This document shows positions 236-45,097 of a DNA stretch of 64,000 bases, in pieces. The notes beneath the pieces are model-generated. The model had not been told where the DNA came from. It made no database searches and saw nothing but the letters and a program-made list of their open reading frames with translations. Origin of the DNA: Convolutriloba macropyga (taxonomy: Eukaryota). The stretch's first letter is position 1. Every line of letters begins with the position of its first letter. The stretch covers positions 18,414,001-18,478,000 of the forward strand of contig NC_134479.1 in assembly GCF_964194025.1 (NCBI RefSeq), read 5' to 3'. Both the position numbers and the translations under genes were made by a program.

Positions 236-3200
236 CTAAATATAGATCAATATTAATCAGCTTTTTTTCTGTCAAGTTTTCACTACTTGTTTATGCAACG
301 TAGAGCTATTTTTGAATTTTATTTTGAAACTACGATTTCTATTCCAAGCTGACAAAGGAGCACAGTTTGAAAATTTGAAGGCAAACTGGAAAATCTAGTG
401 GAAAACTGGAAAATTTAGTTATTCTTTTGGAGCATACAAGCTGGGTAATTAATGAACCGAAAACTTAACAAAATGTTGTATAGAGAAGACCTCAAAAGGA
501 CAGAAAAATGTAAACCAAAAACTCGTGATATACTAAACAATAGAGGCTAATCATTCAGAACGAGAAAAAGAAGAAAAATATCGGAGGTTTCAAAATCTTT
601 TGGATTTTCTCAGTTTCGAAATAACTGAAGAAATCAAAAGTTTTTGACTCCCAAATATTAAGCCGCTAATTGACATGAATTGCACACGAACATTCGTACA
701 TATCAATTGGAATCAGTCAAACAGATCTAACTTTTCCAGAATGAAAAGCTGAGAAAGTCTGATGGGAAAATTTCATTTAGATATGAAGTTCGAACAAATT
801 CTATAGATCTGGGGCAATATCGCATACTTAAGACAACATCAGTTTATTGAGAAAAAGGCAATTAAAAAATAGTATTCCTTTTTTATTCAACTTCAGTTTG
901 TGCTGATAAATTGAGTTACAATTAAGCTCTCAAGTTAGGATCTAGAGTCAGTCAATGGAAACAGCACGAGACTCATCAGCATGTTTTCACATTATAGAAA
1001 ACAACTGTTTTCTTATATAAGAGCAGAAACTTTTGGTTTTATATAGAAACTTGTTTTTGACCACTTTCTACATGAGTTTACATCAGACCTCAAGTTCAAG
1101 TCCACTAGTTGGACATGGCTTCTATTTAACTAAGAAAAAAATCTACGCAAACCTTTTTGGGACAGTGAAATCAATGAAATAGGAGAGAGAGACCAAACCT
1201 TCTTTATGAACTTCACCTTAAAACGATTTTCAGTATTTTTAAATTGCTCTTAAAGTGGCATCAATTGAAGAGCAACTTGATATAGTGGACATTTTATACG
1301 AAAGTGAATAGTTTAAGATTTAACAAAAAGGCAGCTCAAAATTATTGCTCTGAAAAAATTCTGTCAGTTTTTGGACGAACTTAAAACAAACAACGAAACT
1401 AAAACCTCAAATATTCAGTTGATTAGAGTTTTAACATTAGAAAAAAGATTTGAGTAAAACATAATTGTGATATTTGTATTTGCCGGAAAACAACCGCCGT
1501 TGACCCGCTTGACGCACATTGAGATTGCAACAGAAAAATAAAAAATAAGAGAGAGAAAATGACAGGATTTTTTTAAGCATCAAATTAATTTTTACTTGTT
1601 GTGCAAATTCTGCAAATTTGGTTAGATTCTAAAATTACTCTTAATTCAACTTTTAAAATAAACGCTATTAAGCATGATAGTGAAGCCAGCTAGCAATCGC
1701 TTTAATGATCTTTGATAACCTAATGCACTATGCCTTAATGAGCGGGTTTTATATGTTTATCTTGTTTCTTTCGATCTTTTGATTTTGCTCTTATGACTTT
1801 CACCGAATTCACTACATTGCGTAATTCAATGCGTGAAAAAAATTAAAATCCATTCAGTGGAAACACTGACAACCTTGAAACACGTGAAAACCTTGACTTA
1901 TGTAAAATGAAAAACGTGATCAATAGATAAAGCGAATTAAAAAAAGAAGAGCGCCTAAATAATAGTCGCTGAGAGGCTGGCGGCGGTAACTAATAAGCGG
2001 TTGGAAAAGAATTGGAAAGTGTTTTTGTCCTGTGTATCCGCAGCAAGCTATCAAAACCCTTCTAAGCCTGTTACTTGTTTGCATGTTTCATTGGGAATTT
2101 TTTCACATGAAGATTGATTTTGCAAATCGTTGGCTTCTTTAACTGAAATTCTTTTATTGAAATTCTTCCAATGTTTTGCTAAGGTAGACTTCGCTTAAGA
2201 GCATAAACTGATTCATGTTCTACATTCCCAATTTAGAAAATCAATTTAACCCAAAAAGCGGTTTCTTTTTGAGAAATAAAACAAAAAGGCACAAACACTT
2301 AGCAAAATTATATCGAATTCACGCCTGGGGAAGTTTCAGGAAAGATTTTCATATGAAAGGAACTCTTACTTAAATTCAATAGAGAAATAATTGTTTCGAG
2401 TAATTTTTTTTCCTGTCTAGTCTTTGTTTCAGCACTTTAGCGTTTTTGAGTTCGGTAATTCTCGTTGAACATCAATTTATCCCGATCTAAATGCCAATGC
2501 ATATGGCTCACATCTAGTAAATAATAAATCAAATTCAGTGTTCGCTTACATACAAATTTTGCTAAAGAAGATTAAAGTTGATCCTTCGAATTGCTTTTGG
2601 ACAATGCAAAAGTTCTTCCCTTTCGGAACAAAAAAGACGCCATTGAAATTGGATTTATTTTAACTAGTATTGTAACATGTTACATTGTAACTAACAAATA
2701 CTGCCAAATGAATTTTTATGTTTTGGCGAATCAGTTACTTAGATACTAATAGAAAATTAGCTCTAGAATCTTAGAGGAATTACACGTCAACTACCACAAT
2801 CGGGCTTAACCACCACAGAATTTGATGATCAGACGAAAAACCGATAGTACAAAAAATACATTAAAAAGACCAGCACCTCTTAAAGTGCTAGAAACATCGT
2901 TTGAGAGCAATTTTTCAGATCTAACAACCTAATCTTCACATTTGACAAAATAAGAATAATATACTGTGCACTTCCTTACCTGTTAGAACTGGCTTTTGTG
3001 CTCTGAGCTGCTCTAGATTGATAGACGACGTACGTATCTTTCTGTGCAATGGGTGCAAACACAGGCACGCCTTGGTGGTTGGGCTCCGTCGCAGAATAAT
3101 GGTAGACGGCACCACTTAAATGTCCCACTTAAAACGCCGACTCTGAAACAAATTTTCCCTTTCAACAAGTAGGAAAACTAAAATATTGAAATATTGTCTG

Positions 3201-6200
3201 GTTACCGACAATTCACAGTGAAAGAAGAATTAATACCAATGCGATCTAGACATGCTTTATAATTTTACCATTTAGAATTTCACTAGTGCATAAAAATGGT
3301 CAAAAACGTACATCATCATCAAAAGAACAAAAAAAAATCAACTAATTCTTCCCTGATGCAAGCCAACCAAACGACACATATTTTTAAAATGATTCTCACA
3401 AGAAGGCAATAGCGAGCGCACCAATAAATCACATAATGGTACTTTTGCAGGTGATGCTGCTCTTTGACATTTTATTCTTCACGGGAAAACCTTGATTCAT
3501 ACATGTTCAATCCTCCATTTAACAGAGCGTTCATATTTTACGTCACAAACGTCACAAACTGAAGGGAGTATTTACCCGAATTGGGGAGCCACTTGATACA
3601 GGTAACTTTGGACTGTTCATATGCTTTCTCCTCATTGAACAACTTGCCATTATTCTGCCCTCCTCTGTAGTCTGTCAGCTGCGCTTGACCCTGTGTGAAC
3701 CCAACCTATAACAATCAATTACCTGTAAATTGTCAAAATACTTAAAAACAAAAAACACTTCTGAAAAAGCAGAAATCTCAATAGTATTTCAAGAGAAAAA
3801 CTTTCTCTGCAATTTGAATTTGCCCTGAATCCTTCCTGCTTTTTAATCGATAAGTTTAAATAAAAGGCAGAAAATGTCATTTGTAATATACCTTAGTCCG
3901 GCTATATTATTGTGTTAAATTTGTTGAAGTAATGTTTCCCGCTAATTTAATTAACTACTTAGTAGCATGGCTTTTATTACTTAAATTATTCTTTTCGCAT
4001 GATTAATTGTTCAGGGCCTGAGCAGTTTCAATATTGCTTCGGAGCAGGGACGACAGCTATAAGTTTTGTCACTAGAGAAAGAGATTCCAATCTAAGACTG
4101 AATTACTTGTCTACTGATTTTCAACTTGACAATCTTGGTTGTGTTGCTTAGATTATTACTTTTTAAGACCTGAGGGCCGTATTTACATTTGAGTAATCAC
4201 TTACACAAATACATCAAGATTAAATCAAGATAAATAGAACTTCTGGCGCGTGCTGGCACGTGCCGGGCAAATAAGATGAACATAGTAAAGTTTACATTGT
4301 AAATATAAATACAGGCTAGCATTGTCACAAATTCCTCTATTATGGGTAAATCAAATAACAAAAGATAGTTAAATGGTTTTTAAGACAAATATACTTGAGA
4401 AAGTTTACAGGATGTTAATAAAATAAATATACATTTTCTCATCTTAATAAGGCAGAAAAAAGAAGTCTATATATGGCCTTGAGATTATAGCAAGTATAGC
4501 ACTAAATAAGGCGATCAGTAAAATTGGGGAAAAGATATATCGATTACTATATAAAACGTACTTTAGGACGTTACACTACCCACGTTTAATGAAAAATTTA
4601 GAAATAAATTTTTTTTTGATAGAATACACAGATAAAATGTTAATAAAGAGCCACCCTTAAGTTTCTGTTGCGTTTTCGTCAGTTTCCATACAGTCGTTAT
4701 TAAGTTGTTGAAGAAATTCGGGATTCAGTCGATTAGAGCGCATAGAAATTGTCGATTTTGATCGTCTAATCGGCAAATTGGGCTTTTGTGTAGTTGCAGA
4801 GATATCAACTTAGAGTTTTAACAATAGAAAAAAGATTTGAGTAAAGCATAATTGTGATATTTGTATTTGCCGGAAAACAACCGCCGTTGACCCGCTTGAC
4901 GCACATTGAGATTGCAACAGAAAAATAAAAAACAAGAGATAGAAAATGACAGGATTTTTTAAGCATCAAATTAATTTTTACTTGTTGTGCAAATTCTGCA
5001 AATTTGGTTAGATTCTAAAATTACTCTTAATTCAGCTTTTAAAATAAACGCTATTAAGCATGATAGTGAAGCCAGCTAGCAATCGCTTTAATGATCTTTG
5101 ATAACCTAATGCACTATGCCTTAATGAGCGGGTTTCATATGTTTATCTTGTTTCTTTCGATCTTTTGATTTTGCTCTTATGACTTTCACCGAATTCACTA
5201 CATTGCGTAATTCAATGCGTGAAAAAAATTAAAATCCATTCAGTTGAAACACTGACAACCTTGAAACACGTGAAAACCTTGACTTATGTAAAATGAAAAA
5301 CGTGATCAATAGGTAAAGCGAATTAAAAAAAGAAGAGCGCCTAAATAATAGTCGCTGAGAGGCTGGCGGCGTTAACTAATAAGCGGTTGGAAAAGAATTG
5401 GAAAGTGTTTTTGTCCTGTGTATCCGCAGCAAGCTATCAAAACCCTTCTAAGCCTGTTACTTGTTTGCATGTTTCATTGGGAATTTTTTCACATGAAGAT
5501 TGATTTTGCAAATCGTTGGCTTCTTTAACTGAAATTCTTTTATTGAAATTCTTCCAATGTTTTGCTAAGGTAGACTTCGCTTAAGAGCATAAACTGATTC
5601 ATGTTCTACATTCCCAATTTACAAAATCAATTTAACCCAAAAAGCGGTTTCTTTTTGAGAAATAAAACAAAAAGGCACAAACACTTAGCAAAATTATATC
5701 GAATTCACGCCTGGGGAAGTTTCAGGAAAGATTTTCATATGAAAGGAACTCTTACTTAAATTCAATAGAGAAATAATTGTTTCGAGTAATTTTTTTTCCT
5801 GTCTAGTCTTTGTTTCAGCACTTTAGCGTTTTTGAGTTCGGTAATTCTCGTTGAACATCAATTTATCCCGATCTAAATGCCAATGCATATGGCTCACATC
5901 TAGTAAATAATAAATCAAATTCAGTGTTCGCTTACATACAAATTTTGCTAAAGAAGATTAAAGTTGATCCTTCAAATTGCTTTTGGACAATGCAAAAGTT
6001 CTTCCCTTTCGGAACAAAAAAGACGCCATTGAAATTGGATTTATTTTAACTAGTATTGTAACATGTTACATTGTAACTAACAAATACTGCCAAATGAATT
6101 TTTATGTTTTGGCGAATCAGTTACTTAGATACTAATAGAAAATTAGCTCTAGAATCTTAGAGGAATTACACGTCAACTACTACAATCGGGCTTAACCACC

Positions 6201-9200
6201 ACAGAATTTGATGATCAGACGAAAAACCGATAGTACAAAAAATACATTAAAAAGACCAGCACCTCTTAAAGTGCTAGAAACATCGTTTGAGAGCAATTTT
6301 TCAGATCTAACAACCTAATCTTCACATTTGACAAAATAAGAATAATATACTGTGCACTTCCTTACCTGTTAGAACTGGCTTTTGTGCTCTGAGCTGCTCT
6401 AGATTGATAGACGACGTACGTATCTTTCTGTGCAATGGGTACAAACACAGGCACGCCTTGGTGGTTGGGCTCCGTCGCAGAATAATGGTAGATGGCACCA
6501 CTTAAATGTCCCACTACAAACTCCGACTCTGAAACAAATTTTCCCTTTCAACAAGAAGGAAAACTAAAATATTGAAATATTGTCTGGTTACCGACAATTC
6601 ACAGTGAAAGAAGAATTAATACCAATGCGATCTAGACATGCTTTATAATTTTACCATTTAGAATTTCACTAGTGCATAAAAATGGTCAAAAACGTACATC
6701 ATCATCAAAAGAACAAAAAAAATCAACTAATTCTTCCCTGATGCAAGCCAACCAAACGACACATATTTTTAAAATGATTCTCACAAGAAGGCAATAGCGA
6801 GCGCACCAATAAATCACATAATGGTACTTTTGCAGGTGATGCTGCTCTTTGACATTTTATTCTTCACGGGAAAACCTTGATTCATACATGTTCAATCCTC
6901 CATTTAACAGAGCGTTCATATTTTACGTCACAAACGTCACAAACTGAAGGGAGTATTTACCCGAATTGGGGAGCCACTTGATACAGGTAACTTTGGACTG
7001 TTCATATGCTTTCTCCTCATTGAACAACTTGCCATTATTCTGCCCTCCTCTGTAGTCTGTCAGCTGCGCTTGACCCTGTGTGAACCCAACCTATAACAAT
7101 CAATTACCTGTAAATTGTCAAAATACTTAAAAACAAAAAACACTTCTGAAAAAGCAGAAATCTCAATAGTATTTCAAGAGAAAAACTTTCTCTGCAATTT
7201 GAATTTGCCCTGAATCCTTCCTGCTTTTTAATCGATAAGTTTAAATAAAAGGCAGAAAAGGTCATTTGTAATATACCTTAGTCCGGCTATATTATTGTGT
7301 TAAATTTGTTGAAGTAATGTTTCCCGCTAATTTAATTAACTACTCAGTAGCATGGCTTTTATTACTTAAATTATTCTTTTCGCATGATTAATTGTTCAGG
7401 GCCTGAGCAGTTTCAATCTTGCTTCGGAGCAGGGCCGACAGCTATAAGTTTTGTCACTAGAGAAAGAGCTTCCAATCTAAGACTGAATTACTTGTCTACT
7501 GATTTTCAACTTGACAATCTTGGTTGTGTTGCTTAGATTATTACTTTTTAAGACCTGAGGGCCGTATTTACATTTGAGTAATCACTTACACAAATACATC
7601 AAGATTAAATCAAGATAAATAGAACTTCTGGCGCGTGCTGGCACGTGCCGGGCAAATAAGATGAACATAGTAAAGTTTACATTGTAAATATAAATACAGG
7701 CTAGCATTGTCACACATTCCTCTATTATGGGTAAATCAAATAACAAAAGATAGTTAAATGGTTTTTAAGACAAATATACTTGAGAAAGTTTACAGGATGT
7801 TAATGAAATAAATATACATTTTCTCATCTTAATAAGGCAGAAAAATGAAGTCTATATATGGCCTTGAGATTATAGCAAGTATAGCACTAAATAAGGCGAT
7901 CAGTAAAATTGGGGAAAAGATATATCGATTACTATATAAAACGTACTTTAGGACGTTACACTACCCACGTTTAATGAAAAATTTAGATATAATTTTTTTT
8001 GATAGAATACACAGATAAAATGTTAATAAGGAGCCACCCTTAAGTTTCTGTCGCGTTTTCGTCAGTTTCCATACAGTCGTTATTAAGTTGTTGAAGAAAT
8101 TCGGGATTCAGTCGATTAGAGCGCATAGAAATTGTCGATTTTGATCGTCTAATCGGCAAATTGGGCTTTTGTGTAGTTGCAGAGATATCAACTTTGTGAT
8201 CGGTCATTGTTTTAAGAACGCATATTTCATTGTCAAGGTATTGAATTTCTTCCTCGATTTTCAGTAGACGTGCATCTATATTGTTATCTATGTTTGTTTC
8301 TCCAACAATAGTCATCAAATTTTTCATTTTATGGTCAAGGGACTGTATCTTTGTCAACTCACTGTTTGCAACCGAAACTACTGGTTTAAGAGGGATTTTT
8401 CCATCGGAGAATTTCATAAAATTGGGGGTTATTCGTTGGAAAAATTTGATCTTATGATACAGATACATTACTAGAATGTGAAGGAGAAGATTTCCAATGA
8501 AGACTGTAATAGTCAGAGTAAGGGAAAGCTTTATTGGATTATAAGATTCTAACTTTTCGACCAGGGACGGCTTCAGGAGTTGCATTTTGTGGACCAAAGG
8601 GGCTGCTATTTTGTCTAAATCGGCTTGTTTAAGAGAGTCAGTTGTGCTGATCATTTCTACTCTCAATTGTTGAAACAATTCAATGTTAGCATCTGTTTTC
8701 GACGTAAAGTAAGGGAGTTTCTCAATTTCCGGTAACGATGAAATGAGGTGTTGAAGAGAGTCAGCAAGTTTAACATCGATTCGAGTTGCTGGAATTGTTT
8801 GGCAACTCGAGAGGTCCGGTCGGATTTTGATGTGTTTGCTGATCAATTGGATTCCGCATTGGAGAGTTATTATGCAGAGTTGACATCCCTCCTTCTCTTC
8901 ACTAGTTGGCAATGAGGCATCGTTCAAATTGTATTCTCTCCACGTAAATGGTTTTGCGCTCATGATTAGCCAAATCCCGTAACCGAGACTTCTGGCGGTT
9001 TCAGGCGTTGGGAGCATTACTTTTTCTGTTTGGCATACAGAAAGTGCAACAACTGTCGCGTGAAAATAGAGTGTTGCTAAGCAAGACGATTGTGCTAGAT
9101 GGGTCTCCATAGTTTCGTGGCATATACGATAAGTTGAGGATCCTAGACAGTTATCGAGCTGTTGTTGGGTTAATGTAGTCGTCTCCATGGAATCCTGCGA

Positions 9201-12200
9201 AATCGCCAAGTGTGGACCTTCGATGATCCATTGAAGGGCTTCTTTAGGATCCTGTTGGGGCATTGGGATGACGTGTGCACTGTAGACGTGAAATGAAGTT
9301 TGACGGGATGCTGGAGGAATTGCTAGAGTCAAAAGTAATCCTTGTTCAACGGTGGCAATTTCGTAAACAAGTTTGGCATCATAATATGACATGAGATCCT
9401 TCATGGGTATTGCCAGTGACAAACGATCTGTTGAATGTTTCTGGCTATCATGAACTGAATCTAAGACAGCTAATAATGATTCGCGGGGAACTAAAGACAT
9501 TGGTAAACGTTTATCTAACAGAATGGGTATGGAGTTTAGCAAGTTTATACTATAGGCATATAAAGCTGAACGATAGCTTTTGATGTCGGCGTATAAGATT
9601 GATAACAGTGAAGCTACAGCATCGAAGTTGAAATTTAATTGCTGATTTGAGAAGAGCATTTGTGTACAATCTCGTAATAAATGGAAATTTTTCTCGAAGA
9701 TGTTGAATTGATCTTGTACTACTTTCCAATTTTTATTTTGATTATCTTGCATTTCCTGGTGGATTTTCGAAACTTTAGCAATTTCATTAGAGATAAGAAA
9801 GAATTTTTCGTTGCTCGCTGACTCAACTTCGAGTACATAATCAGTAAGAACTGATGCGTAATCGTTAAGTCGTGCAATGTTTTCTGCATTTTTGCGTCCG
9901 TAATTTTGGCATTTTCCGAACAATCTGGTTATTCCGCATCCTTCTGAACTTGCCATTGAGACTCCGAGGGATCCAAAGAGTGCTATTTCAGCAACTGCGG
10001 CGGCTGCTGCTACTGGTGCTGCACGTTTTTGTCTGCTTCTTTGACCGTTTTCTTCAGGGCTTAAAAATTCCGCGGTAACGTTGCGCATATGTTTCACTTC
10101 GTTTTCTGCTGATTTTGTCTCATTTGTGATTTTTGAGAGCATCCAATCAAAGTTGAAAGGTTTATTAGATGAGTTAAATGGTTCTGAAAAGTTAACTGGA
10201 TACACAATCGACGGTTGTGTCCACATAGTTGCTAGTTTTTCGAGCATATCTTCGATTTGTTGTTTCATAACAAAATCGTATTGCGGGAAAGGAACTAGGA
10301 ATTCAACGTTAACGAACTTCTCTGCGAGTAGAATCTTTGATTCTTTGTGAAAAAGAATTCCTTTAGTTAGCGCTTCATATTTAGTTGGGGTCTCTGTATT
10401 AATAATTTCAGAAACTAAGAAGAAAAGAGAAAGAAATGAACAATTTAGTGTTTTCATCGTGAGAAAAATAAAGTGTACTGTAAGTCGAAATTCGAACCAA
10501 GTGATGTTCAATAGAGACCCGCTGTGTTGTTCTACTAATATTTGTCTCAATTGTTAACATTACCATACTGGGTTGATGTTCATTTTATGGTAAATAATTG
10601 TTCTAGCATTTTATATACAGATTTCCAATTATGGTGATGCTGATGTTTGATTTGTAAATAAACATAGTTTCTCCCAGCTGCACGGGTCGAAGCAGCGCTC
10701 AACCTGAGCCAGGGGGGCAAATAATTAGGTTCTTACGGCACCATTTCCCAGCAACACGGGTCGAGGTTGCGCCACTTGCGGCTAATAATGCGAAGCAAGT
10801 AGGGCTAAGTGTTTTCAAGTTTTCTAGATTTTGACCATGTGTTTTAACATTACTGTGTTAAATTCCATTCTGTCTTGCTGCCCAAATGGCAAATTTTTCC
10901 CGAAGTTTGGAGTGTGGGTGAAGACAGTGATTCCACAATGTCAGCAGCAAGTTGAGGGGGGGAGTGGCGGAGGACAATCTGATAGTGATATCAGGCTGTT
11001 TTATATGATTCTGACTGTCCTGTCAATTTACCTCAGCATTATTGCAGTTGTGGCTTGCAAGCTTAGTTTTTTCAAGTTGTTGAAGGTATTGCATTGAATT
11101 GGAGAAATCCTTTTCGCAATTTTTATTATTGTGCATAACAGTTTAGAGTGTACCAGTTGAGACAATTTGTTAGAGTCAAGGTCAGCCGTGAGTTTACAAA
11201 GTTACACACGATCAAGAAAACAGATTCAGCGTAGATGTCTCATTAGACTGGAAATGATATTATGAACTAGTGCGGCTTTACCTTTTGTCATAAATGTAGT
11301 TTTGTGCATGTTGGTGTTGTTGTTGTGCATTTTGGTCATTTAAGCATGTGTTATAGTAAGTGCTGCAATTAAACGTTAATTGCATGTGTTGTCTCAGAGC
11401 TGTGCGGTATAAACATGTTACGCGACTTGTTCATTTCAATCGCTTGTGCAGTTGAACGGCTTGTTAATATTTTAACCGCTTTGTTTTGCTATTAACATTT
11501 GCATGAATTAACAAGAGTTGTTTCATTCCAGTTGAAAATGACTAACTTTAATGACAAATGCTCCTGGTTATTGAAATTGGCCAGAGAAGCGAAATTTGAG
11601 AGATTTGGTTTCCGAAAGTTACAGCATCAAGAGAAGTGGGAAATTAATGAGGGTGATAGTTTTCCAACTGAACCGTTTTATTTGAGAGGGCCGGCTGCTG
11701 AACACATATATTCATGGAATCAAGATTTAATGGACAAATGGAACGGCGGTCTGGTTGACGTCAAGGATTTTGTTAGAAATGAAGGAGGAGTTATTGGTGC
11801 TGAAAATAATGGACAGGACCATGGATACGGTGACTCAAATACAATTTCCTTTGAATTACCTCGAGAAAAAGTTAATTTTGTGGATCACCCAGCGTTGAAC
11901 ATTATGAGTGCTGCCAGTATCGCTGCCGTGGGGGCGTGATGCACTGTTGGACATATCGAATGGGGGGTGGAGAGTCTGTTGCAAAAGTGATATCCCGATC
12001 AAAATTGTGGTTGATAGCATCAAATTCTGATTCCGGAGAAGCCCTATTTGATTTATCCACATTTGATCTATTATTTGATTTTTTAACGAAGGATGCCGAT
12101 CGAAGAGTTGCAAGCAAGGCATCACTTGAAAATCATCTGTTTTATCACGTTGCCGAGCCCTTAGATCTTATAATTCAGCCGAGCTTTGCTGTACATGCGG

Positions 12201-15200
12201 TCATAACTGAGCCAACTTTTAGCCGGGGGAAACGTGTATGGGCCTTAGTTACTGGTTATGAGGCCATTGCAAAGAAAGACCCATCGTCAATAAGAGGCAG
12301 GCGAGTTATTAACGATTTTTGTTTGAATGTTCGTAAGGGACTCATAGCGCAGGAAATGAGTATTCGTTCTCAACTTGAGTTATTACGTTTATTAAAGATC
12401 GCCGATTATCGAAGAAGTGTCGCTAAAAGTGTGAAAGATGGTGAGAACCCCCCAAGTGCCATTGTAGAGAGCAATGTGACGACCCATGTAAAGATCTTAA
12501 TTCGAAGTGGGTATGATTTAAAATCGAGTTTGGCTGATATTAAGCAGAAGAAGGCAAAGGCGTACAATTTCGCGCCAAAGAGTTCCCAAGAAAAGAAGAT
12601 AGTTTTGCGATACACAGATCTGACGGCTGCTGAGAAACGAGAATGGCCTGCTGATGTTTTGGAGCAGTTAGATGAGAAGCTGCTGCATTGACAGTTACAG
12701 TACTTATTAAGTGAGTGAATGTCTTTTCTTTTCGAAATTGCTATAAGTCATTCTTTTTTTGCGTCATGTAAAGTGAGCATTTAGATAACCCGCAAGCTAA
12801 TAGACGTTGCTTTGTTTGCATGAATCTGTTCCAATTATATGCACGCTTGTTGTTGTGTAATAATTATAGGCTGTATTTACTCTCTTTCACTCAGAAAGAA
12901 CTAAATAAAAATTGGCTATATTTTACACTGTTTTTCGGACACCTGCAATTTAATGGTCAGAACTTCGAATAAAAGACAAAATTTCAATTTCTACTCCAGC
13001 CAATCGTTTTCTAGGTTCAAGTACTCTCGATTGGTACTATCTGTTCGTTCCATTTCAGTCTCATTCTGTTGGGGGGCGGTTTTAAAGTTTTGGCGAACTT
13101 TTGACGGATTGAATTTTTGGCTATTCAGACGGTATAAAATTATGAAAAACTCTTCAATCACGTCGTTTTTTGGTCTGATTCATTAGTACGGAAGCCAATC
13201 ACAATGGTGGTATAGTTAGTTTCTGTCAAAATACTTTTTTCGTTGAACTATGAGTGTTTTTGTTGATTTTTGAGCCGTTTTTCAGGGGTCGGATTTCCTC
13301 GAATTCAGGTCTCCAGTACTCTTAGCCAAATGGCCTCAGACTCGTTCCTGGGGCACCTGGACCCTGGTTTGTATCCCTGGGGGTCCAGAAAAATGTTTCC
13401 GGGCGTCTGAAGGCCTTTTTTGGTGCTCTAACTTAGTCATTTTTGGAGGGTAACCTGTGTGGTATCAATTTTGGGTCATTTTCTTGAAAGAAGTTCATTT
13501 TTCTCCAATATTACATAAACTAGCCTCATTTTCGGTTCTTCAGCGTCATTGGCAACATATGTAGAGGCGATGGATGTACTTTGTGTCATCTAAAGTTGAT
13601 TTTTGCTAGGGACATTGCAGATAAACCAGTTGCACGTTCCACATTTTTCTGTTATTTTCGAACTTTTGGCGCTGTTTTTAGGCGCTTTAAGGCATGATAA
13701 TGCGCGTCAAATGGTTAACTGGCAACTGCACATTATCAGTTAGTGGCCGTGTTATAGTTGTATAGGTGAATTTTTACTGGGACATCCGAAAATACTTCAA
13801 TAATCTGTCGTAAAACACTTTCTGAAAGTTGATCGAGACCACATCCGAATTTTGGTAAATTTATTGAACGTATGTTGTGCTTTAATATAACAAATCGTAG
13901 TGTGTGAAGAGCAACTGAGAGGTTGTAATAAGTAGGTTTATCATAGTAGTTCTCTTTCGTGACCAGGTTGAAGATATATCAATTTAAATTTGTGTCATAA
14001 AATGAGATAACGGAACCTGGTGGTCTTTGCGCAAATTCTTGACTTTGCAGCATTTCGGTGTAGTAATTGACAATTTGCCAGGCGAGGCCTTTACTCATCT
14101 TCATATTGCTTGATATGCAACGTGCAAAAGAGCGTCTGGAGTTGAGAATATCACCTCTATGATAGAAAAAATTGGCTCTTGTTTTTCCGATTTCAATTAC
14201 ATTTATGTTTGAAGTAGTTTGTTTGCTCTTTGACTGGCTTCGGGTTACCCTTATGTTATCGGCTGTTGAACCTCTTTGATATCTCTCAATGCTAGATCGG
14301 ACTTGGTCTAGTTTCGTTTCTCTAGTTGGAATTTGGTCCCTTCTTGATCTGCGCGATGATTCTGCAATTAGTTGGTGTTTTTGTTCTTTTGTTAAGATAG
14401 GTGGCTGTGTGGGAGATTCGGGCAGTTGTGGCGTTTGTGAACGTGAACCGTAGCGTGCTACTGGTTCCCAAGATTCAAATTTTCTGACTCCTCTCATTTT
14501 TGCAAAGTTGACTCTGTTTTGATTGCTTCGAGTGCTTGGTCCCGGTTGTTGTTCTGTATCTTCTTCGTCGTTTTCTCTAATTATTTCGCTCTCAGCGGCT
14601 GCAGGGAGTCTTTCAGGGTACTGAAATTCTTCCGGAGTTGCAATAATCTCGGGGCTATCTGAAAGGCTGGCTCGGGGTGAATTTTCTTGCGAATTTCTTG
14701 GCGAATTCATTGGTGAAGGTGTTCTAATTTCCGCTGGTGGTATTACGGGTATTGGCGGTATTACCGGCACTATCGGAGGTACTGGTGCTGCCAATGGCGT
14801 TGCAGGGGCTCCATTTGGAGGAACAGTTACGCCAAGGCGTATTTGTGAAGGTTGAACTGTTGCAGTCTTTGAAATTGCGGTACTTTGCTCCTCTTCTAAT
14901 AAATTTGGGATATACTCGTCAAATAATTCTGGCTCATTTCGAGTTGTTCTTCTGGAAGGATCCGCTTCAAACTTTGCAGGATCAATTTCCTGTATGTCTT
15001 CTGGTGGCTCTGTCAGTTTGATAGGTCTTAGTCTGATCCGATGAACACATTGAGTGTAATTTGTTCCTGTTTTTCTAATAATATAATTTGAATTTGTTAA
15101 GAATTTTTCGACTCTATAGAGTGGTAGCCATGTTTGTACTGCTTTCTGGGTAAAATCGTTTTGCCTTGTTAAACGAGGGTTTAGTAGTAAACATGAGTGT

Positions 15201-18200
15201 AAAACATGTGAGTGCAATTTGAGTGGCTGTGCTTCAGCTTTTTGATCGTAATAACTTCTGTATCGCTGGTAAGAATCTAAAAGTCTTTGTTTATTTTCGC
15301 CAAATTTTTAAGCATTGCGTCTTGTAGCTGCGAAACGTAATCTGAATTGACTTCAACTGCTTGCATTGCTTGTGTGGAAAAACGGAGATCAAGGGGTTTA
15401 ACAGGTTCACGTCCATGAAATAGAGTTGTCGGACAACAATTAATTGAAGAATGATACGATGTATTGTGTATAAAGGTTGCAAGCGGTACTGTGCCAATCA
15501 TTCCACTGTTCATTGGAGTTGAGTTTTAGGATCCGTTTAAGTGCTGCGTGTGAGCGTTCCACTACTCCAATTGTCTGTGGGTGTTTCATCGTAGCATGTT
15601 TGAGTTTAACTTCGAGTAACTTCGTTAATTCAGCCATTAGCTTTGAGGTGAAATTTGTTCCTAAATCACTCAGTAAAGTACTAGGTAAGTAGCTATGCTG
15701 GAAGAAAATCTTCACAAGCTCTCTGGCAACTGTGTCGGCACTACCATTTGTCAGTGGTACTGCAAACAAGTACTTTGTAAACACGTCAATTCCACTAAGA
15801 ACAAATTTGTAAATTGGGCCTTTTTGTTCAACTAAGTCGATTTGCATCATTTCTCCGGGAAATGACTGTAGTGAAGATACAGGCTGTAATGGTGGTTGCA
15901 GTTGCTTGTTCGTTGTTTGCTTGAGCTGTAGGCATGTTATGCAGTTTTTAATGAAATCGATGAAATGTTCTGTAAAACCAGGATAGTAAAATCGTTTTCG
16001 GAATTCTTGAATTGTGCGAAGTATTCCCAAATGTCCTCCTGTTGGTGAGTTGTGTAGTCTATAGATTACTTCTTTCCAGAGATGCTTTGGTAGGCAGTAC
16101 TGCTTAAAAATTATTTTGCCTGTGTCATCAAAGAATTGTCTGTATAATGTATTGTTTTCAATTTCCAAACGGTCCAACTGTTTCACATATTTCTTCAATC
16201 GTCGGGATGCATTTTTCAAGTTGCTGCTTAAGTCGTTGCGTTTCCACTCAATTGCCTGCATGATCTCCTCGTCTTTTGTCTGCTCACTTGCCAAATCTAA
16301 TATTTCTTCTCTATCCGACAAATCGTTCAAAAGATCAGCTTGGTTCGCATATTGTATTGCATTAACTTCCGCACGCTTCAACTTAAAGAGACTATTTAGA
16401 TTTTCATCTCCATTCTCTCGTTTTCGTTCAATATACGCGTCGTAAAGTCCGAGTTCCTGTAGTTGTGAGACGATGGTAACTTCTTCTATCTCTGATTCAG
16501 GGACAGTGTTCAGTTGGTCGATATTCGAAATGGAAACATCAGGTGATTTCGCTTCAGATTCAACATATATTTCACGGACTGGTACTTTGTCTGTTAGTTT
16601 AAGGGACAAGCTGGCTCCTTTATCCGTCTGTACGCGTGAGAGAAAATCTGCTGCATAGTTAGCTTTGCCAGGAATATGGGCAATAACTATATTAAACGAA
16701 AGAACTCGGTCCAGAAAGTTCCATAGTGATGGAGGAATGGTTTTTGACTGAAAGAAATGCGTTAAACTTCGATTATCCGTGAGTACAAGTACTGGATGGC
16801 TGGATGCCCAGATATAGTGGGAAAACTGGTCTAATGCAAAGTAAAGTGCTAAGATTTCTTTGTAATAAGTCGAGAACTTCAGCTGTGCTGTTGTGAAGAG
16901 TTGTGATCCAAAAGATACGGGAGCATAGACTTTTTTTCCTTTGACTGTTTTCCTGTCACGTAGTCTTCAACCATAAGCACAGATCCGGCTCCGTAGTAGC
17001 TTGCGTCACAGAGGAGGACATATTGTAGGCCAGGTTTAGGCAATCTGAGCGTCATCTCTGTTGCTTCAAGTAAATCCTTTTTCACAGTTTCTAATGCATT
17101 GTAATGTGTTTCTTTCGCTTCAAAATTGGTTCCTTTACGTAACAACTGATAAAACGGTATAAGCTTCTCGCCTAAATTTGGGATGAAATTTCTGAAGAAC
17201 TGGGCGAAGCCAATTAGTCTTTTGACCTGTTTAGTTGTTCTTGGCATCGTAATCTTCATTTAAAACTTTTTGATTTTCTCTGCTTGTGGGGATATTCCCT
17301 CATTTGTAATTGTACTGCCCAGAAATTTGATTGACTGTGAGGCTATTTCGCATTTTTCTGGTGACAATTTCAGTCCAGATCTTCGGATGCATTCGAAAAT
17401 TTTCCTTAGACTAGGAAGTAGCTGACTAAATTCTGTTACTGCACTCCCAATATCGTCCATGAATTGTGTGCATATACCGGCTGCTAAACAAGGGTCTAGA
17501 TAATGGCGAATGAATGAGCTAAAACCAGTGACTGATTTGCTAAGTCCTTGAGCTAGACATTTGTACGCGTAAGTTCTTGATGAGAAATTGAAAGCTAAGA
17601 GTTGTACTGAGGTATCGTCCGCCATCTGTACGCAATGGTAAGCTTGCGAGCAGTCAAGTTTTGTGAACAATGTTTTTCCTGCGAAATGACTGGTTGCATC
17701 GGCCATGTTTGAGATTGGGAAGTTTGTGCTGTGGTAGTTATTTTTAAGTAGGTGGTTGACTCTTCTCAGATCAATTAAAATTCGCAGTTTGCCTGACTCT
17801 TTTCTATGAGCAAATAAAGGACTACTGTATTTAGACTGTGACAAAGCTGTTATAAGTCCATAGTAGTGCATTAATGCTAATTCAATGTGCAGTTCGTCTC
17901 GTAGATGTATTGGAGTTGGAGGTCCTTGTACATATACGGGTAAGTCATGCTCTGGAGTTAGCTTTATTTTCAGTTCCGTATTGTATCCAACGTCAAATCG
18001 GTGTTTGGCGAAAATGTCACAATATTCAATTAATAAATGCTCGCATTCTTCTATTTGCTTTTCGTTTAGTGGCGAATTTTCCCAGTTGAATTTGCTGATA
18101 AGGAATTTACGGTCTTCTTCATTACTTCGTGGATCAAACTGCTCCAATTTTTGGAAATTTAATATTTGGTCGTAAATTTCTTGTTGTAACAACGGCAAAT

Positions 18201-21200
18201 TACTTGGGTCCTCGCAAGTTTCTGGTGTCGGAAACCATAGTTTACTATATTCCGGTTGAGGTCTCCTAGTTTGGCCTGGTTTGTGTTGGGTAAAATCTTG
18301 AATGAGCTGGTTCAATTCCGCAAAATAATCTTTGTTTCTTGATTTTGCTAACGTTATCAGTTGTGGGTCAATTTGTATCAATTGGTCGGCTTGCTCGGTT
18401 GAAAGAATTGAGAATCTGCCTACCTCGGTTCGGCTATTGATTGTGATAGGGTGCTCAGTTATGTTTATGGCAGAGACGTACAATGTATTATTCTTTCCTA
18501 CAGTACTTAGCGAAGAAGTTAGAGCAATCTCTGTTTCTTTTCAAGAATTTCATTAGGAGTGATTACTCCACTTTTGTTCTCAAACTGATCGGTTTTGTCT
18601 GATAGATAGCATTCTAGGAAGATTTGCTCGTTGGGCTGTATTGTGTGCTTCTTGTTTGTGTAAATGGGAATCTTCTTATGTCTTACTGCTCGTCGTTTTT
18701 CGTTTACAGGCTTGATTTCATTAATTTGAACGGTCAGATCGGGGAATTGTATAAGGGCTTGTTTTGGACTAATTGAAATATCATGCTTGACAAAGAAGGG
18801 GTTACCAAGGATGACCGAGTTTGTTGAGGAAAGGACGAGGAAGTCTTCAACAAACTCTCTGTGAGCGAGTCTTCAACAAACTCTCTCTTTCGGCCTGTTT
18901 CTCAATTCTGACTAGTTGTCCTCCAGCCATTTTGAATAAAGTACAATCGGGTTGCTTCAATTTGACTGCGTTCTTGTCAGTGTCAGTTATTTCTTGAAGT
19001 AAACTGTTGCTTATGACGTTTGCACAAGCGCCGGTGTCAATTAGTGCTCGACGGCTTATTCCGTTATTAAATTTAATTTTGACATAGGGGAGAAGGGATG
19101 ATCTCATATTTGAATTTCTATTGTAAAGATTAAATAGTTTGCTAGACTGCTCTATAGATTTCGTGAACTGTTTGCGACTTTTGTGCGTTAAGGGTGGCTT
19201 TATTAGTTTTTTGATTGGCAATTAAATGGGAATGAGGTCCCTCTATTATTAGTTCTATCTCTCTGAGAACACTGACTTGATCGGTGATTTGGATAACCAC
19301 ATGTATAACAGAAGGTACCACTGGATCTAGTCACAGGCATATATGGGCTGGTGGGCATGCGGAATTGTGACTGGGCTGTGAAATTTCGAGGTTAAAACAC
19401 TTGAGCGTTAGTGTTTGGGTATCGGGATCTAGGATTTCTATTAAAGAAATTTCGACCTCTAAAATTATTTCCTCTGTAAGAGTTTTGATACATTGGACTT
19501 GTACAGTTATTTTGACTTGCATAGTTATTTCTGGTCGTGTAGGGCGCCGCGGAGAATTGCCCCTGCCTATTAAATGGTTGCTGGGGAGAGTGGGTTACAT
19601 CTCTTTGTGTTGTTGATTCTATCTGTGCCGCCGTGATGCGGTCGTCAATCGTTTGAAGCCTTTTGTCTAGTGAATCTTGCGTCTGGTTCAGTTTAGAGAG
19701 CGCATTTATCAAGTTTTCGGACACGGCATTATTGATTTCATTAAACCCATCTTCAGGATAGTCATCTTTTCTGCACATGTCTCTAATTGTCATCTGTTGT
19801 CGAGCAGTGGTGCAGAGATCGGTAACAAGCGTGGCTGGTGGTTGTTCCATCAATTTTGATCGCAGCCATCCCGGCATAGCTTTAATGAAGATTCGCTTAA
19901 CTTGTTCGTTCTTGTTGTCCTCCGCTGCTTGCAATCTAGCATCTCGTGCGGCTGTTTCTCCATCAAAGCGTGCGTGCTCTGCTCTATCCCCTGCTCCTCC
20001 ATCTCCTGGAAGCGCTAACGCTGCCACTGCTGGTAGATTTGGCGTTGGGTAGGCACGCTGAGCCTTTGTTTAAGTTCACTAGAAAATTTTCGGAGCCGTC
20101 TGTTTTTGGGTCAAATCGCAGCTGTTCTAATTTAAGAACTTTAAGTACTTCTTGAAGATCTTGATGCGCGAAGTTGTCCCTGAGTGCTGTGAGGCTTAAT
20201 TCAAGATCATTTCTGGTTGCTTCGGGCAACGTTTGAAAATATCGTAACGCTTGAAAATATCGGAGGTGGAGTTGCAGAAAATTTGATTGTTGGTTAGCAG
20301 GAATTGCTGCGACACCAATAAAACCTCGGAAAGGTGCTCAAATTGGCGGAAACTTTAGTTTTCGGCTCCGCTATAGGGCTCCACTGTTATTTGGGCATTT
20401 GCGGCCATCTCAGTTTCTTATAATTTTAAAACTGCACTGAATGAAAAGGTGATGATCTGGATGAGCTGGGAATGTGATTATTCAGAAATTATGATGAGGG
20501 GAGATTCAAAATCATCTAAATCGATGTCATAGCCATGGGTCATGAGATGTCTAACTTTAAAGAATTCACGTGCTTTTCGTCGCAAAGTCTTGGGGATAAA
20601 TATTAATAGGGCGCGTTTGTCAATAGGATTTTGAGTTAAAAGCACAATTTGTTTTGTTTTGTCAGATACAAAGGCACTAATAACTGTTGAGATAATAAGG
20701 TTGTTAGTTTGGGGGCTAATGAATTGTATGTAGTTACAGTCTACATATTCCAAAAATGATTTGAATAGCGGCAGTTATTAACAACAGGGAGTATTTGGGT
20801 AATGTATAAATCGTGGGAGGGCATTTTAATTTAGCTCCAAAATTTATATGTTCTAACTCACAGTTTCCAAATTGACTCGGTTTTGTTACCAATAGGGGGT
20901 TTCACTCTCTCATTCTGTGTGTATGTATCTCAGTGTGATGTCACCGTCTTTGGGCGTCAACTTCTTTTAGACTCCAATCTCTGTTGCATTGACAATTGAT
21001 AATTGGAAAAAGCTAATAGCGCTGTCTGTCATGAAGAGGTAAATGAAGAGTGCTGTGATCAGATAATAAGCAATGATGAAAAAGATAAAGAATGCTACAG
21101 TAAAATATAAACAAAATTTGTCGAAAGACATCGATAATGGGACAATTATAAAGTGCTAATTTCAATTAGAATCTCCGCTTTCGAATATTAGTTGGAATTT

Positions 21201-24200
21201 CAAGCTTTCTAAGTCGAGATACATATCCCTTTTTATGTGCCTAATTACTGCTTTGAATTCATACTGATTGTCAAATGATACTATTGCAATGAGCCTGTCT
21301 GTATAGTCTTCTGTAAATCCAACAATAAAAATAATGAATAATTTATCTTCAAGAAAGATAGAGTACGTTTCTGCGGAGGTATTTTCGATGTTGGGGCTTC
21401 CGTGGGAAAAGAGTGTTAAATCAAATTTGTGCAGTTGTCTAACTTCATCTGAATCGTGCAAATAAGTTAATAATGTTTTGAAGAGCAATGACATTTAGAA
21501 AAAAGAAACATTTAAAAGGTAAACGATTTTTGTTTTTTGAAGGAACTAATTGGAAAAGCTGTCTACACTCCTGTCACCATGTAATATACCTTAGTCCGGC
21601 TATATTATTGTGTTAAATTTGTTGAAGTAATGTTTCCCGCTAATTTAATTAACTACTTAGTAGCATGGCTTTTATTACTTAAATTATTCTTTTCGCATGA
21701 TTAATTGTTCAGGGCCTGAGCAGTTTCAATATTGCTTCGGAGCAGGGCCGACAGCTATAAGTTTTGTCACTAGAGAAAGAGATTCCAATCTAAGACTGAA
21801 TTACTTGTCTACTGATTTTGAACTTGACAATCTTGGTTGTGTTGCTTAGATTATTACTTTTTAAGACCTGAGGGCCGTATTTACATTTGAGTAATCACTT
21901 ACACAAATACATCAAGATTAAATCAAGATAAATAGAACTTCTGGCGCGTGCTGTCACGTGCCGGGCAAATAAGATGAACATAGTAAAGTTTACATTGTAA
22001 ATATAAATACAGGCTAGCATTGTCACAAATTCCTCTATTATGGGTAAATCAAATAACAAAAGATAGTTAAATGGTTTTTAAGACAAATATACTTGAGAAA
22101 GTTTACAGGATGTTAATAAAATAAATATAAATTTTCTCATCTTAATAAGGCAAAAATGAAGTCTTAATATGGCCTTGAGATTATAGCAAGTATAGCACTA
22201 AATAAGGCGAACAGTAAAATTGGGGAAAAGATATATCGATTACTATATAAAACGTACTTTAGGACGTTACATCATTTAACCATACAAAAATTTAATTTCT
22301 CTCAGTTTGGAGTGAGCAGGTAGACACGTAAGAGATTTGATAACTATAATACTTTTTTGATAAAATGACCTAATTGTTTATTTTCGCCGCACCTATTGCT
22401 CTTATGTTAATTTTTCAAATGATGCTGCTCAGAAACAATGAGGTGTTTTCTAATAAAACAATCCTAAACAATTGCTTGAAACTACGACTGAGCAACCACT
22501 GCTTGAGTTCGAGAGCACATAAAACTTTTTTGGACTTTCAGAAATTCGCCCAAATTTGCTGTTTTTATACGAGTCATTATCGATCTAACCATATGACAGA
22601 ATGCGCTTACAAATGTTCGTTTTGAATTTTAAGGGTTCCGAACGAATACTGAATTCAATGATCTCTCATAATCTGAAGTCAATTTTTAAACTTTCCCTGG
22701 ATTTCATACCATCCTTACTATTACTCCATTTCAGGGTATTATTATGCATTTTAATAATAGCATGATGCTTTCCTTGTACTGATTTGATTAAATATTGATT
22801 GTTTTGCCGTAGTTTCTGCTGTTAGTTAATTTTGTCAATTCGTGCTATCATTTAAAACGTGATATAATTTCTATACCGATATAGGCAGTCTTAATTGCTT
22901 AACAATTCCAAAGCGTTAATGAGTATAATGGTTTTGAGAACACTGATTTTCAAAAAAAAACCTTAGTTTTGCCCTCATCTTTTTCTTTTTAATCAAAACT
23001 TGGTAGGTTTTGGAAAAACAAAGATTTTTTCGTTTTTGATTGATCGAATGTAGCGGAAAGTGATGTCAAACCTCTAGTTACCCTTTCTCTTATGTGGAGG
23101 AAGGTCGGAGCTAGCTGAGCGAAAGCTCAAATGCGCAATCCTCCTCCTTGTATACGATTGAACACACTATTTGCATTGAAGTACATCGTATATTATATAC
23201 GTATATGTAGACTCAACTGCATTACTCAATTTGACATGAAAGGAGAGTACGCAGAAAAACTGTATACAAATAAATGCTCAAGTTTAGAATATAAAAAATT
23301 TGTGGCATGAAACCAACGCTTATCAAATGCTATTATAAGGATAGAACATCCGAAAACCCATTTTTGTTTATTCGTTTTTTCTTTTAGCGTTACTTAATTT
23401 ACAGATGCCAATGACTTATATGTTTGTTAAATTACCTGTTCGCGCCTTTATTGAATGAGTTATTCACAGTTGACTCATTGGAGAGTCAAGTATTTGGGCT
23501 TTTTTGTCACGTACATCTGTAATTTAAGTTTATGCGACTACAATTTTAGCACTAGTTATCACTGGTTTCATCAGTCTTCGGCCTCGTAGTCTAGTAGTCT
23601 AATTCCAGTAGTCTAATATCAACTTATGTGAAAAGCTTCCCTGAACCCAGTACTCCGTTTCATAATACAAACAAATGTGGCAAGCACTCACTAAATTGAG
23701 GTGATAAACTTCGGATCCAGTAGAGTGACTGTCCACCTGGTATACGTCACACAGATCGTGAGAAGTAGGGGGAGCTCCTCTGTAGAATCGTCTGTCCATC
23801 TTGTGCAGATCCAACTCCACACATCTATTTGCGCCCCGATACGCATACCAATAGGTCGCCATACCTGAAGGCGAAAAATACAGCTTCATGGGCAAAAATT
23901 TATTAGTCGCATCTTATGCTATTAACCTTTAACTACTTATCGAATAATGTTTAACTGTTATAATAATTCATTCAATTCAGCTTTCGATCAACCACTCATT
24001 TGAAAATGTAGCAAAAAGACACCAACTTCAAGAATAAACAAAACTTCCTTGGTTTACTCAAAGCAAAATGATTGCAAGGACAAAATCAAAAAAGGGTCAA
24101 AAGAACATGGTTTGACTCCAAATCGTCAACTCCAACTTTTTTTCAATGAAAGCAGAAACTTGACAAAACTGCTGCTAAAGCAAACTTGTTGATCATTAGA

Positions 24201-44900: not shown

Positions 44901-45097
44901 TCCTTCCGCCACTGTTAATCGGAGCGTCATGAAATCGAGCACTAAACCTACGTACCCTTAGTTATTAATTTATTTTTCCTCACTCGGACTAAAGGGGTAA
45001 AACTCAAAACTTTGAGCCATGGCCAATTTTTGTTTCATTACCGAATGTGTGCACAAACTTTCGCCTAGATAATTTTTCTTTATGGGTGCAAAAACAT

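Follow-up and report, generated by a model that had tools for sequence, protein, structure and literature searches.

Introduction

Methylation of histones and of DNA keeps transposable elements in check and, to our knowledge, few counter-measures encoded by the elements themselves are known. VANDAL transposons of Arabidopsis encode the fast-diversifying VANC anti-silencing proteins (PMC5735166, PMC10398659), and several fungal DNA transposons (Kyakuja-Dileera-Zisupton and others) carry TET/JBP dioxygenases (PMC12730594). Among the elements with long terminal repeats (LTRs), the giant Ty3/Gypsy elements of Phalaenopsis orchids carry an open reading frame (ORF) for an AlkB-type 2-oxoglutarate-dependent dioxygenase (2-ODD), an N6-methyladenosine (m6A) RNA demethylase (PMC9289625), and conserved antisense genes downstream of pol have been described in the Retand elements of plants (PMC11963269). 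Epe1 of Schizosaccharomyces pombe, a JmjC protein, opposes H3K9-methyl heterochromatin (PMC6576747, PMC7192584). Here we describe a gene found in a stretch of 64,000 nucleotides of Convolutriloba macropyga (RefSeq assembly GCF_964194025.1, contig NC_134479.1, positions 18,414,001 to 18,478,000), referred to below as the window, with positions counted from its first letter. The gene lies on the plus strand at 11538-12691, antisense within a Ty3/Gypsy-type LTR retroelement that occupies the minus strand from 7267 to 22271. The reading that we favor, and consider fairly probable, is that of an LTR-borne, antisense, JmjC-fold accessory gene whose intact versions would encode an active nuclear oxygenase opposing silencing. 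Full-text literature searches turned up no LTR element with a JmjC-type gene, in agreement with the initial annotation of this DNA, which knew of no described LTR family with such cargo.

One broken gene, antisense within its element

Two plus-strand ORFs of 146 and 251 codons are found within 11538-12691, between the last pol-derived ORF and the env-like ORF of the element, and the minus strand has no long ORF across this interval. The gene is thereby oriented divergently from env and convergently with pol. The two ORFs were searched separately, unjoined. Residues 41-145 of the first piece align to residues 4-109 of the protein P0005 (39% identity, E 9e-23), and residues 10-247 of the second to residues 120-356 of the same protein (44% identity, E 9e-67). 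P0005 is an uninterrupted natural homologue of 358 amino acids that spans both pieces in order, and this collinear alignment identifies the two ORFs as remnants of one gene. Collinear homology extends to P0010 and P0076, and the intact homologues of the gene measure 358-397 amino acids. When the longer piece was compared with 5.8 billion proteins, eight unnamed proteins from ENA assemblies were recovered, with E-values down to 2e-75, well out of reach of a chance match.

The initial annotation had joined the two ORFs by mending the sequence; the natural, uninterrupted homologues align to them in order and no repair is needed. The peptides that it had quoted are all present, in both ORFs and in a motif stretch between them that is read in the frame of the first, and an acceptor-like string closely precedes the ATG at 11538. 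Its count of one in-frame stop and one frameshift equals the count of our frameshift-aware alignment, and the antisense location within an LTR retroelement is confirmed by the anatomy of the element (see below). It had also spoken of a cryptic demethylase gene; the window copy of this JmjC-fold oxygenase-like gene is instead a pseudogene in a defective element. No product is expected from the window gene or from pol, since both are dead.

The starts of the leftward env-like ORF and the rightward antisense gene are separated by a spacer of ~990 bp (10551-11537), which we infer to be a candidate promoter region of the antisense gene. A poly(A) signal downstream of the gene was looked for and rejected, as AATAAA occurs there only at chance frequency.

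A small, unnamed family with a predicted JmjC-type fold

The gene belongs to a small, unnamed family of proteins of ~360-420 amino acids. HMMER found 56 relatives among 1.84 billion cluster representatives, the longest of them with 420 amino acids, and no longer or multi-domain relative appeared in that search. Ten of the clusters were looked up, and none had a name or an NCBI or UniRef source. No PHD, CXXC, F-box/LRR or other Pfam domain was detected in any member, which bears out the earlier statement that the protein has no PHD or CXXC reader. Unnamed, without a Pfam model and lacking NCBI or UniRef entries in the clusters examined, the family is a gap in current annotation.

The fold was predicted on the natural relative P0005, not on the broken copy of the window. 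A model built from an alignment of nine sequences was unusable (predicted local distance difference test, pLDDT, of 32) and a deeper alignment was needed; with 59 family sequences AlphaFold2 reached a pLDDT of 92.1 and a predicted template modeling score (pTM) of 0.88. In the model, a JmjC-type double-stranded beta-helix precedes a helical domain; the JmjC oxygenases are a class to which histone demethylases belong. Foldseek searches of this model against the PDB gave 472 matches at E<=1e-3, and the best 50 of the 472 are all JmjC-family structures, with a probability of 1.00. The top match is ceKDM7A (E 3.3e-8), and FIH, KDM5B, TYW5, PHF8 (15th), UTY, KDM4A and JMJ14 are also among the matches. 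The E-values of FIH, KDM5B, TYW5 and UTY are within a factor of five of that of ceKDM7A; the longest structural alignments are those with ceKDM7A and PHF8. Against viral models, Foldseek returned only generic cupin, AlkB and JmjC matches (E 1e-6 to 1e-4) and no close viral relative. The placement in the KDM2/KDM7 group that had been put forward from the sequence has ceKDM7A at the top and PHF8 in the list in its favor, and the equally good matches to FIH, KDM5B, TYW5 and UTY against it. As far as the model goes, KDM7A/PHF8, FIH, TYW5 and KDM5B score alike and do not single out a subfamily.

All five cofactor positions proposed by the initial annotation are conserved across the columns of the family. 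In P0005 numbering, the residues predicted to bind Fe(II) are His116 (conserved in 17/20 sequences), Glu118 (18 Glu and one Asp of 22) and His195 (38/42). Thr113, conserved in 18/19 family sequences, and Lys133 (23/25) are predicted by analogy to bind 2-oxoglutarate, at a plausible spacing, with the Thr three residues ahead of the first His and the Lys 15 residues past the Glu. We take this spacing to resemble that of the FIH and PHF8-type cofactor sites. In the P0005 model the residues at the cofactor positions are located at strand ends, as expected of a double-stranded beta-helix. The window retains all three His/Glu/His codons, within a reading frame that is broken around them. Near the C-terminus, in the helical half of the protein, there is a conserved basic motif (family alignment columns 480-500) that could be a nuclear localization signal.

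Histone demethylation is a putative activity of the family. The same JmjC-fold accessory gene might instead have a non-histone role, be it protein hydroxylation (as in FIH), modification of RNA or tRNA (as in TYW5) or non-catalytic binding, as has been argued for Epe1. FIH and TYW5 stand level with the histone demethylases in Foldseek and the family has no histone-tail reader domain. In addition, an AlkB-type RNA demethylase is a documented case of a 2-oxoglutarate (2OG) oxygenase as cargo of a Gypsy element (PMC9289625), and a non-enzymatic function has been reported for Epe1 (PMC7192584). However, the best match and the longest structural alignments point to ceKDM7A and PHF8, and the conserved cofactor positions argue against a purely non-catalytic function. 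On balance, we regard a non-histone role as possible, if somewhat doubtful.

The gene in related elements

Fourteen loci were fetched through the gene (designated L001, L002 and so on). Six of them, all from one sample (L002-L006 and L010), are copies of the window's element family, and the gene keeps its place and strand in all six. The younger copies are ~80-98% identical to the window in their pol and env proteins, and L010 is an older copy (~80% identical DNA) with the same gene version as the window. L014, from the same sample, is a more distant relative, with an env of 57% identity and an intact gene of 386 amino acids beside its env-like ORF. L008, from another sample and more remote still, has an intact pol of 1744 amino acids and an intact gene of 397 amino acids, placed tail to tail; compared with the window, both show saturation at synonymous sites. 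An antisense ORF downstream of pol is therefore common to L002-L006, L008, L010 and L014. Given the same place and strand in copies and relatives, the gene is an old, inherited feature of the element lineage, and the proposal that it belongs to the element family and is conserved there, rather than being a one-off insertion, holds for the six further copies as well as for L008 and L014.

The ratio of nonsynonymous to synonymous substitution rates (dN/dS) was computed on each single-frame piece separately. Between the window and L010 the gene has values of 0.19-0.22, to be compared with 0.14 for the reverse transcriptase (RT), 0.25 for the integrase (INT) and 0.54 for the env-like ORF. Between the window and L005 the values for the gene are 0.24-0.46. 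The initial annotation had suggested dN/dS as a check, and the outcome, ~0.2 for the gene, is far from 1 and comparable to that of RT. These comparisons indicate that the gene was under purifying selection while the element lineage was active.

An exchangeable cassette

Alignment of the window with its near-identical relatives delimits a variable cassette, made up of the antisense gene and its flanks, which at its widest spans 10862-13281. These are the bounds of the divergent block against L002 and L006; they narrow to 10941-13071 against L004 and to ~11480-12655 against L003. The last block is essentially the coding sequence (CDS), and the similarity break coincides with the CDS ends. Outside the divergent block the DNA is 90-97% identical. 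In the comparison with L003, the CDS is only 63% identical and the adjoining spacers 92-94%, with 94% for the spacer at 10551-11537. With L004, the proportion of synonymous differences (pS) is 0.02 in RT and env; in the gene, pS is 0.77-0.86 and the corresponding nonsynonymous value (pN) 0.25-0.30. In other words, the gene is synonymously saturated even where pol and env of the compared elements have 97-98% identity. A single genome harbors at least four versions of the gene: the window shares its version with L005 and L010, L002 and L006 have another in common, and L003 and L004 each have their own. L014 has a fifth. Pairwise, these versions are as distant from each other as are versions from other samples.

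Two other sources of the divergence were considered and rejected. Editing-type hypermutation of the CDS does not fit the 207 transitions and 211 transversions, nearly equal in number and with all substitution classes present, a spectrum that indicates old divergence and not editing. A nested transposon behind the variable block was discarded as no terminal inverted or direct repeats were found.

Sequence comparison thus depicts the gene as an exchangeable cassette, ~1.2-2.4 kb long, set in pol/env backbones that differ very little. The simplest reading is that element lineages present side by side recombine and so pass the gene on as a module whose diversity has long been kept, and a host arms race that keeps the versions diverse would be an attractive explanation. 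Such a clear signature of recombination and long-kept diversity within one retroelement family makes the arms-race hypothesis testable from sequence data alone.

Other mobile contexts and origin of the family

Thirteen of the 14 loci had enough flanking sequence to be read, and all of them represent a mobile-element or repeat context. In another sample, three loci (L011-L013) hold the intact gene within a ~17-kb unit that has terminal direct repeats of 1.2 kb and is present on at least three contigs, with 99.7% identity. No pol or env of the window's family could be detected in this unit. Adjoining the gene there is an ORF of 604 amino acids (L011, 7628-9442, minus strand), also present in L012 and L013, with a weak, sub-threshold match to the SET domain (E 0.0016, 19.3 bits against a cut-off of 22.4). 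L001 and L011-L013 have only the 2.2-kb gene module in common (98.9% identity). In L001, direct repeats of 5.07 kb with 99% identity and fragments of a PIF1 helicase (2264-7328 and 11807-16861) flank a stretch of 4.5 kb that contains the intact gene. A distant member of the family, with 23% identity, is found at 82-1074 of L009. Its neighbors are an ORF of 1446 amino acids (zf-C2H2_jaz and a weak Endonuclease VII match) and, nearby, a Peptidase_C5 (adenain-like) gene, a context that suggests a different mobile element or a virus.

The family thus seems to be confined to mobile elements, of more than one kind. The initial annotation had proposed that the element captured a host gene. This finds no support in the readable loci, all mobile or repetitive, or in the 1.84 billion representatives, among which no longer or multi-domain relative appeared; neither the fetched loci nor the cluster-representative search gave any sign of a host parent gene.

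The variety of contexts raises the question of whether the gene is a self-contained module of ~2.2 kb that travels as a passenger among unrelated mobile elements, instead of an adaptation of the LTR family. The ~17-kb unit with an intact gene and no detectable pol or env of the family, the sharing of nothing but the 2.2-kb module with L001, and the distant member beside an adenain-like protease gene would all suit a passenger, and the block exchanged in the window's family is of similar size. However, no terminal repeats or duplications bound the window block, the gene has kept its position and orientation across LTR lineages whose pol is synonymously saturated (L008), and the dN/dS of the gene on the element lineage equals that of RT. 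We therefore think a mere passenger unlikely, and continue to favor an accessory gene of the LTR lineage.

Breaks in the gene copies

Stops and frameshifts were counted for each gene copy by frameshift-aware alignment. The copies in the window, L003 and L004 have one stop and one frameshift each; L005 and L006 have one stop and two frameshifts each. No stops were found in L002 (one frameshift) or L010 (three frameshifts), and L001, L008 and L011-L014 have unbroken genes. A single frameshift class turns up in 5/7 copies of the window's family, across three gene versions and in a slippage-prone context, and there are two stop classes, each common to two copies. The older L010 has neither the recurrent frameshift class nor either of the shared stop classes. 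We read the shared breaks as recurrent hotspot mutation or as spread by recombination.

Were the breaks of the window gene partly unreal, through a sequencing or assembly artefact or programmed recoding, the gene might still be expressed. Such a view could draw on the recurrence of a single frameshift class at a slippage-prone site in three versions that are synonymously saturated, and on its absence from the older copy of the window's own version. Nevertheless, four of the five copies also have in-frame stops or further frameshifts, the intact genes of L001, L008 and L011-L014 need no recoding, and recurrent slippage during reverse transcription is a simpler explanation. The additional defects in most of these copies make artefact or recoding very unlikely. 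Finally, a one-off fragment of a host gene, or two chance ORFs that show the H-x-E...H pattern by coincidence and have no role in the element, could appeal to the broken window copy and to the failure of every Pfam model to recognize the window gene, but is hardly credible in view of homologues that reach an E-value of 2e-75, the same position in eight other loci, the confident prediction of a JmjC fold and the purifying selection on the gene.

A possible role against silencing

If the gene is an LTR-borne accessory gene opposing silencing, as we favor, an antisense transcript would start in the ~990-bp spacer that it shares with the env-like ORF. To judge from the predicted fold and the conserved positions, the protein would be an active Fe(II)/2-oxoglutarate oxygenase, and it would enter the nucleus, with which the basic motif at the C-terminus fits. 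There it would most likely remove repressive chromatin methyl marks on or near the copies of the element, or otherwise disarm a host silencing factor, and an arms race with the host would maintain the divergent versions of the gene. The element may in this way carry its own tool against chromatin silencing.

Several observations weigh against this scenario. In Pfam, no JmjC or cupin model was found for the window pieces, the intact homologues or the 59 members of the family, even at E<=10, and the best match among the 59 members, to 2OG-FeII_Oxy_5, has an E-value of 0.13. NCBIfam is blank for the family, and searches of PDB sequences by phmmer with P0005 and with the family profile gave only noise. 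The original assignment to JmjC is thus upheld by the predicted fold and Foldseek, and not by the Pfam JmjC model, NCBIfam or the sequence profiles against the PDB. The Foldseek TM-scores are modest (0.25-0.38), with an identity of ~12%, and so the relationship is one of fold, not a close one. The conserved columns form a putative Fe(II)/2OG site, predicted from their positions in the alignment. The related loci were all found via the gene, a route biased towards members that carry it; a query with RT in JGI metagenomes, intended to find members independently of the gene, returned contigs of 1-2.7 kb only. It should also be considered that 7/7 copies of the window's own family carry a broken gene, a universal breakage that fits dispensability or counter-selection as well as the decay of dead copies.

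In its boldest form, the proposal would be that a retrovirus-like lineage of marine animals encodes a JmjC histone demethylase as an anti-silencing weapon, kept in arms-race versions and passed as a cassette between near-identical elements and on to other kinds of mobile element, once beside a possible SET-domain gene. This we put forward tentatively, as a possibility rather than an expectation; if true, it would be the first retroelement-borne chromatin eraser.

Anatomy of the element and other features of the window

The LTR retroelement is complete, with 15,005 bp (7267-22271, minus strand), and was delimited by self-BLAST of the LTRs, the TG..CA termini, the target-site duplication and the Pfam domains of pol. 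On the minus strand, the gene order is gag-like ORF, protease (PR), RT, RNase H, INT and env-like ORF. The 5' LTR (692 bp, 21580-22271, minus strand) starts with TG, ends with CA and is 98.1% identical to the 3' LTR (694 bp, 7267-7960, minus strand), itself found by self-BLAST and with the same TG..CA termini. A target-site duplication of 5 bp (AATGA) surrounds the element, and a primer-binding site beginning with TGG is present after the 5' LTR.

The gag-like ORF (211 amino acids, 19395-20027, minus strand) has only weak coiled-coil matches; L002 and L003 have an ORF in the corresponding place with 66-87% identity to it. Next comes pol, with PR-RT-RNase H-INT and a C-terminal extension, distributed in at least five ORFs (13982-19221, minus strand). 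Pfam recognized in order, on the minus-strand ORFs, an aspartyl protease (weak), RVT_1, RT_RNaseH_2, Integrase_H2C2 and rve. The order PR-RT-RNase H-INT, as in Ty3/Gypsy, is found in the window element and, uninterrupted, in L008. Judging by the latter, the ORF of 412 amino acids beyond INT is the C-terminal portion of pol. Relative to the intact L008 pol of 1744 amino acids (64% identity), a crude frameshift-aware alignment counts two stops and ~9 frame changes in the window pol. With pol broken many times, the window element is a dead copy.

The env-like ORF is open over 836 amino acids (8040-10550, minus strand) and was recognized by crude sequence features only, namely an N-terminal, signal-like hydrophobic segment, a furin-like R-x-K/R-R site with a hydrophobic segment directly behind it, and a membrane anchor at the C-terminus. 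Pfam and PDB searches found no homologue and matched no known envelope protein; with these features and no homologue, "env-like" is a fair label and nothing beyond it. The ORF is 86-98% identical to its counterparts in the related copies. By its sequence, the element is best described as a Ty3/Gypsy-type (Metaviridae-like), retrovirus-like LTR element of an animal, probably an invertebrate of the sea.

The end of the element is involved in a tandem duplication of 3.39 kb with 99% identity, in which 1423-4811 duplicates 4810-8194. Besides ~2.46 kb of downstream flank, the duplicate comprises the 3' LTR and the terminal 234 bp of the element's interior, and so a third LTR copy is found within it at 3882-4575. 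Either a segmental duplication after the insertion or an assembly artefact would explain it.

The composition of the window is eukaryote-like, with a G+C content of 31-41%, and a tRNA scan of the window found none. Two fragments fit an animal genome, a host-like C2H2 zinc-finger ORF (24582-25238, minus strand) and an exon-sized ORF with a HECT ubiquitin-ligase domain (49740-50084, minus strand, E 3e-11). Domains of animal type neighboring the loci are Syntrophin, Otopetrin, ACTMAP, HECT and C2H2. Tandem and nested repeats with a period of ~1.36 kb and 80-94% identity occupy 55073-62313, and dispersed kin of this repeat, with 75-82% identity, are located at ~1480-1986, 4867-5371, 25607-25842, 33798-34091 and 50464-50686. 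A direct repeat of 1.26 kb with 97.5% identity, at 37772-39033 and 43797-45059, ~6 kb apart, could represent the LTRs of a second, smaller element.

Comparison with known systems

The family shares with the JmjC oxygenases (KDM7A/PHF8, FIH, TYW5, KDM5B) the predicted double-stranded beta-helix, with a Foldseek probability of 1.00, and the His-x-Glu/Asp...His pattern, and it has a Thr and a Lys that are putative 2-oxoglutarate ligands. It departs from them in its sequence (~12% identity and no match to Pfam JmjC/Cupin or to PDB sequences), in its small size (360-420 amino acids, without JmjN, PHD, CXXC, ARID or any other domain) and in being found only in mobile-element contexts. Epe1 differs in other ways, being a host gene that is recruited via HP1/Swi6 and whose catalytic role is debated, and no sequence relationship between it and the family was detected.

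Among element-borne genes, the orchid AlkB is comparable as a 2OG/Fe(II) oxygenase encoded in an additional ORF of a large Gypsy-type element and proposed to act against host surveillance. However, that enzyme is of AlkB type, in a plant host, and was acquired recently and closely resembles host genes, whereas the family described here is old, divergent, antisense and animal, and has no recognizable host parent. The TET/JBP enzymes are a further case in which transposable elements of several lineages encode a 2OG oxygenase that can remove an epigenetic mark of silencing, although they belong to DNA transposons of fungal hosts and to another oxygenase family, one that acts on DNA bases. In the Retand elements an antisense gene downstream of pol is likewise a trait of an LTR family. 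Their protein is unrelated, as no TRP28 match was found by Pfam in our family, and here the gene sits between pol and an env-like ORF. VANC is similar as a transposon-encoded factor that is thought to oppose the silencing of its own family and that diversifies quickly along with the neighboring non-coding sequence. VANDAL, however, is a DNA transposon whose protein and mechanism have no relation to those considered here, and anti-silencing has been demonstrated for VANC, whereas for the family of the window it would be deduced.

Element-borne 2OG oxygenases were therefore already known, and what is new here is the oxygenase class, the host kingdom and the arrangement as an antisense cassette. 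With a JmjC-fold oxygenase encoded antisense in an animal retrovirus-like element, conserved and under selection, VANC, TET/JBP and the orchid AlkB would be joined by a candidate that acts at the level of chromatin, and by a case from animals.

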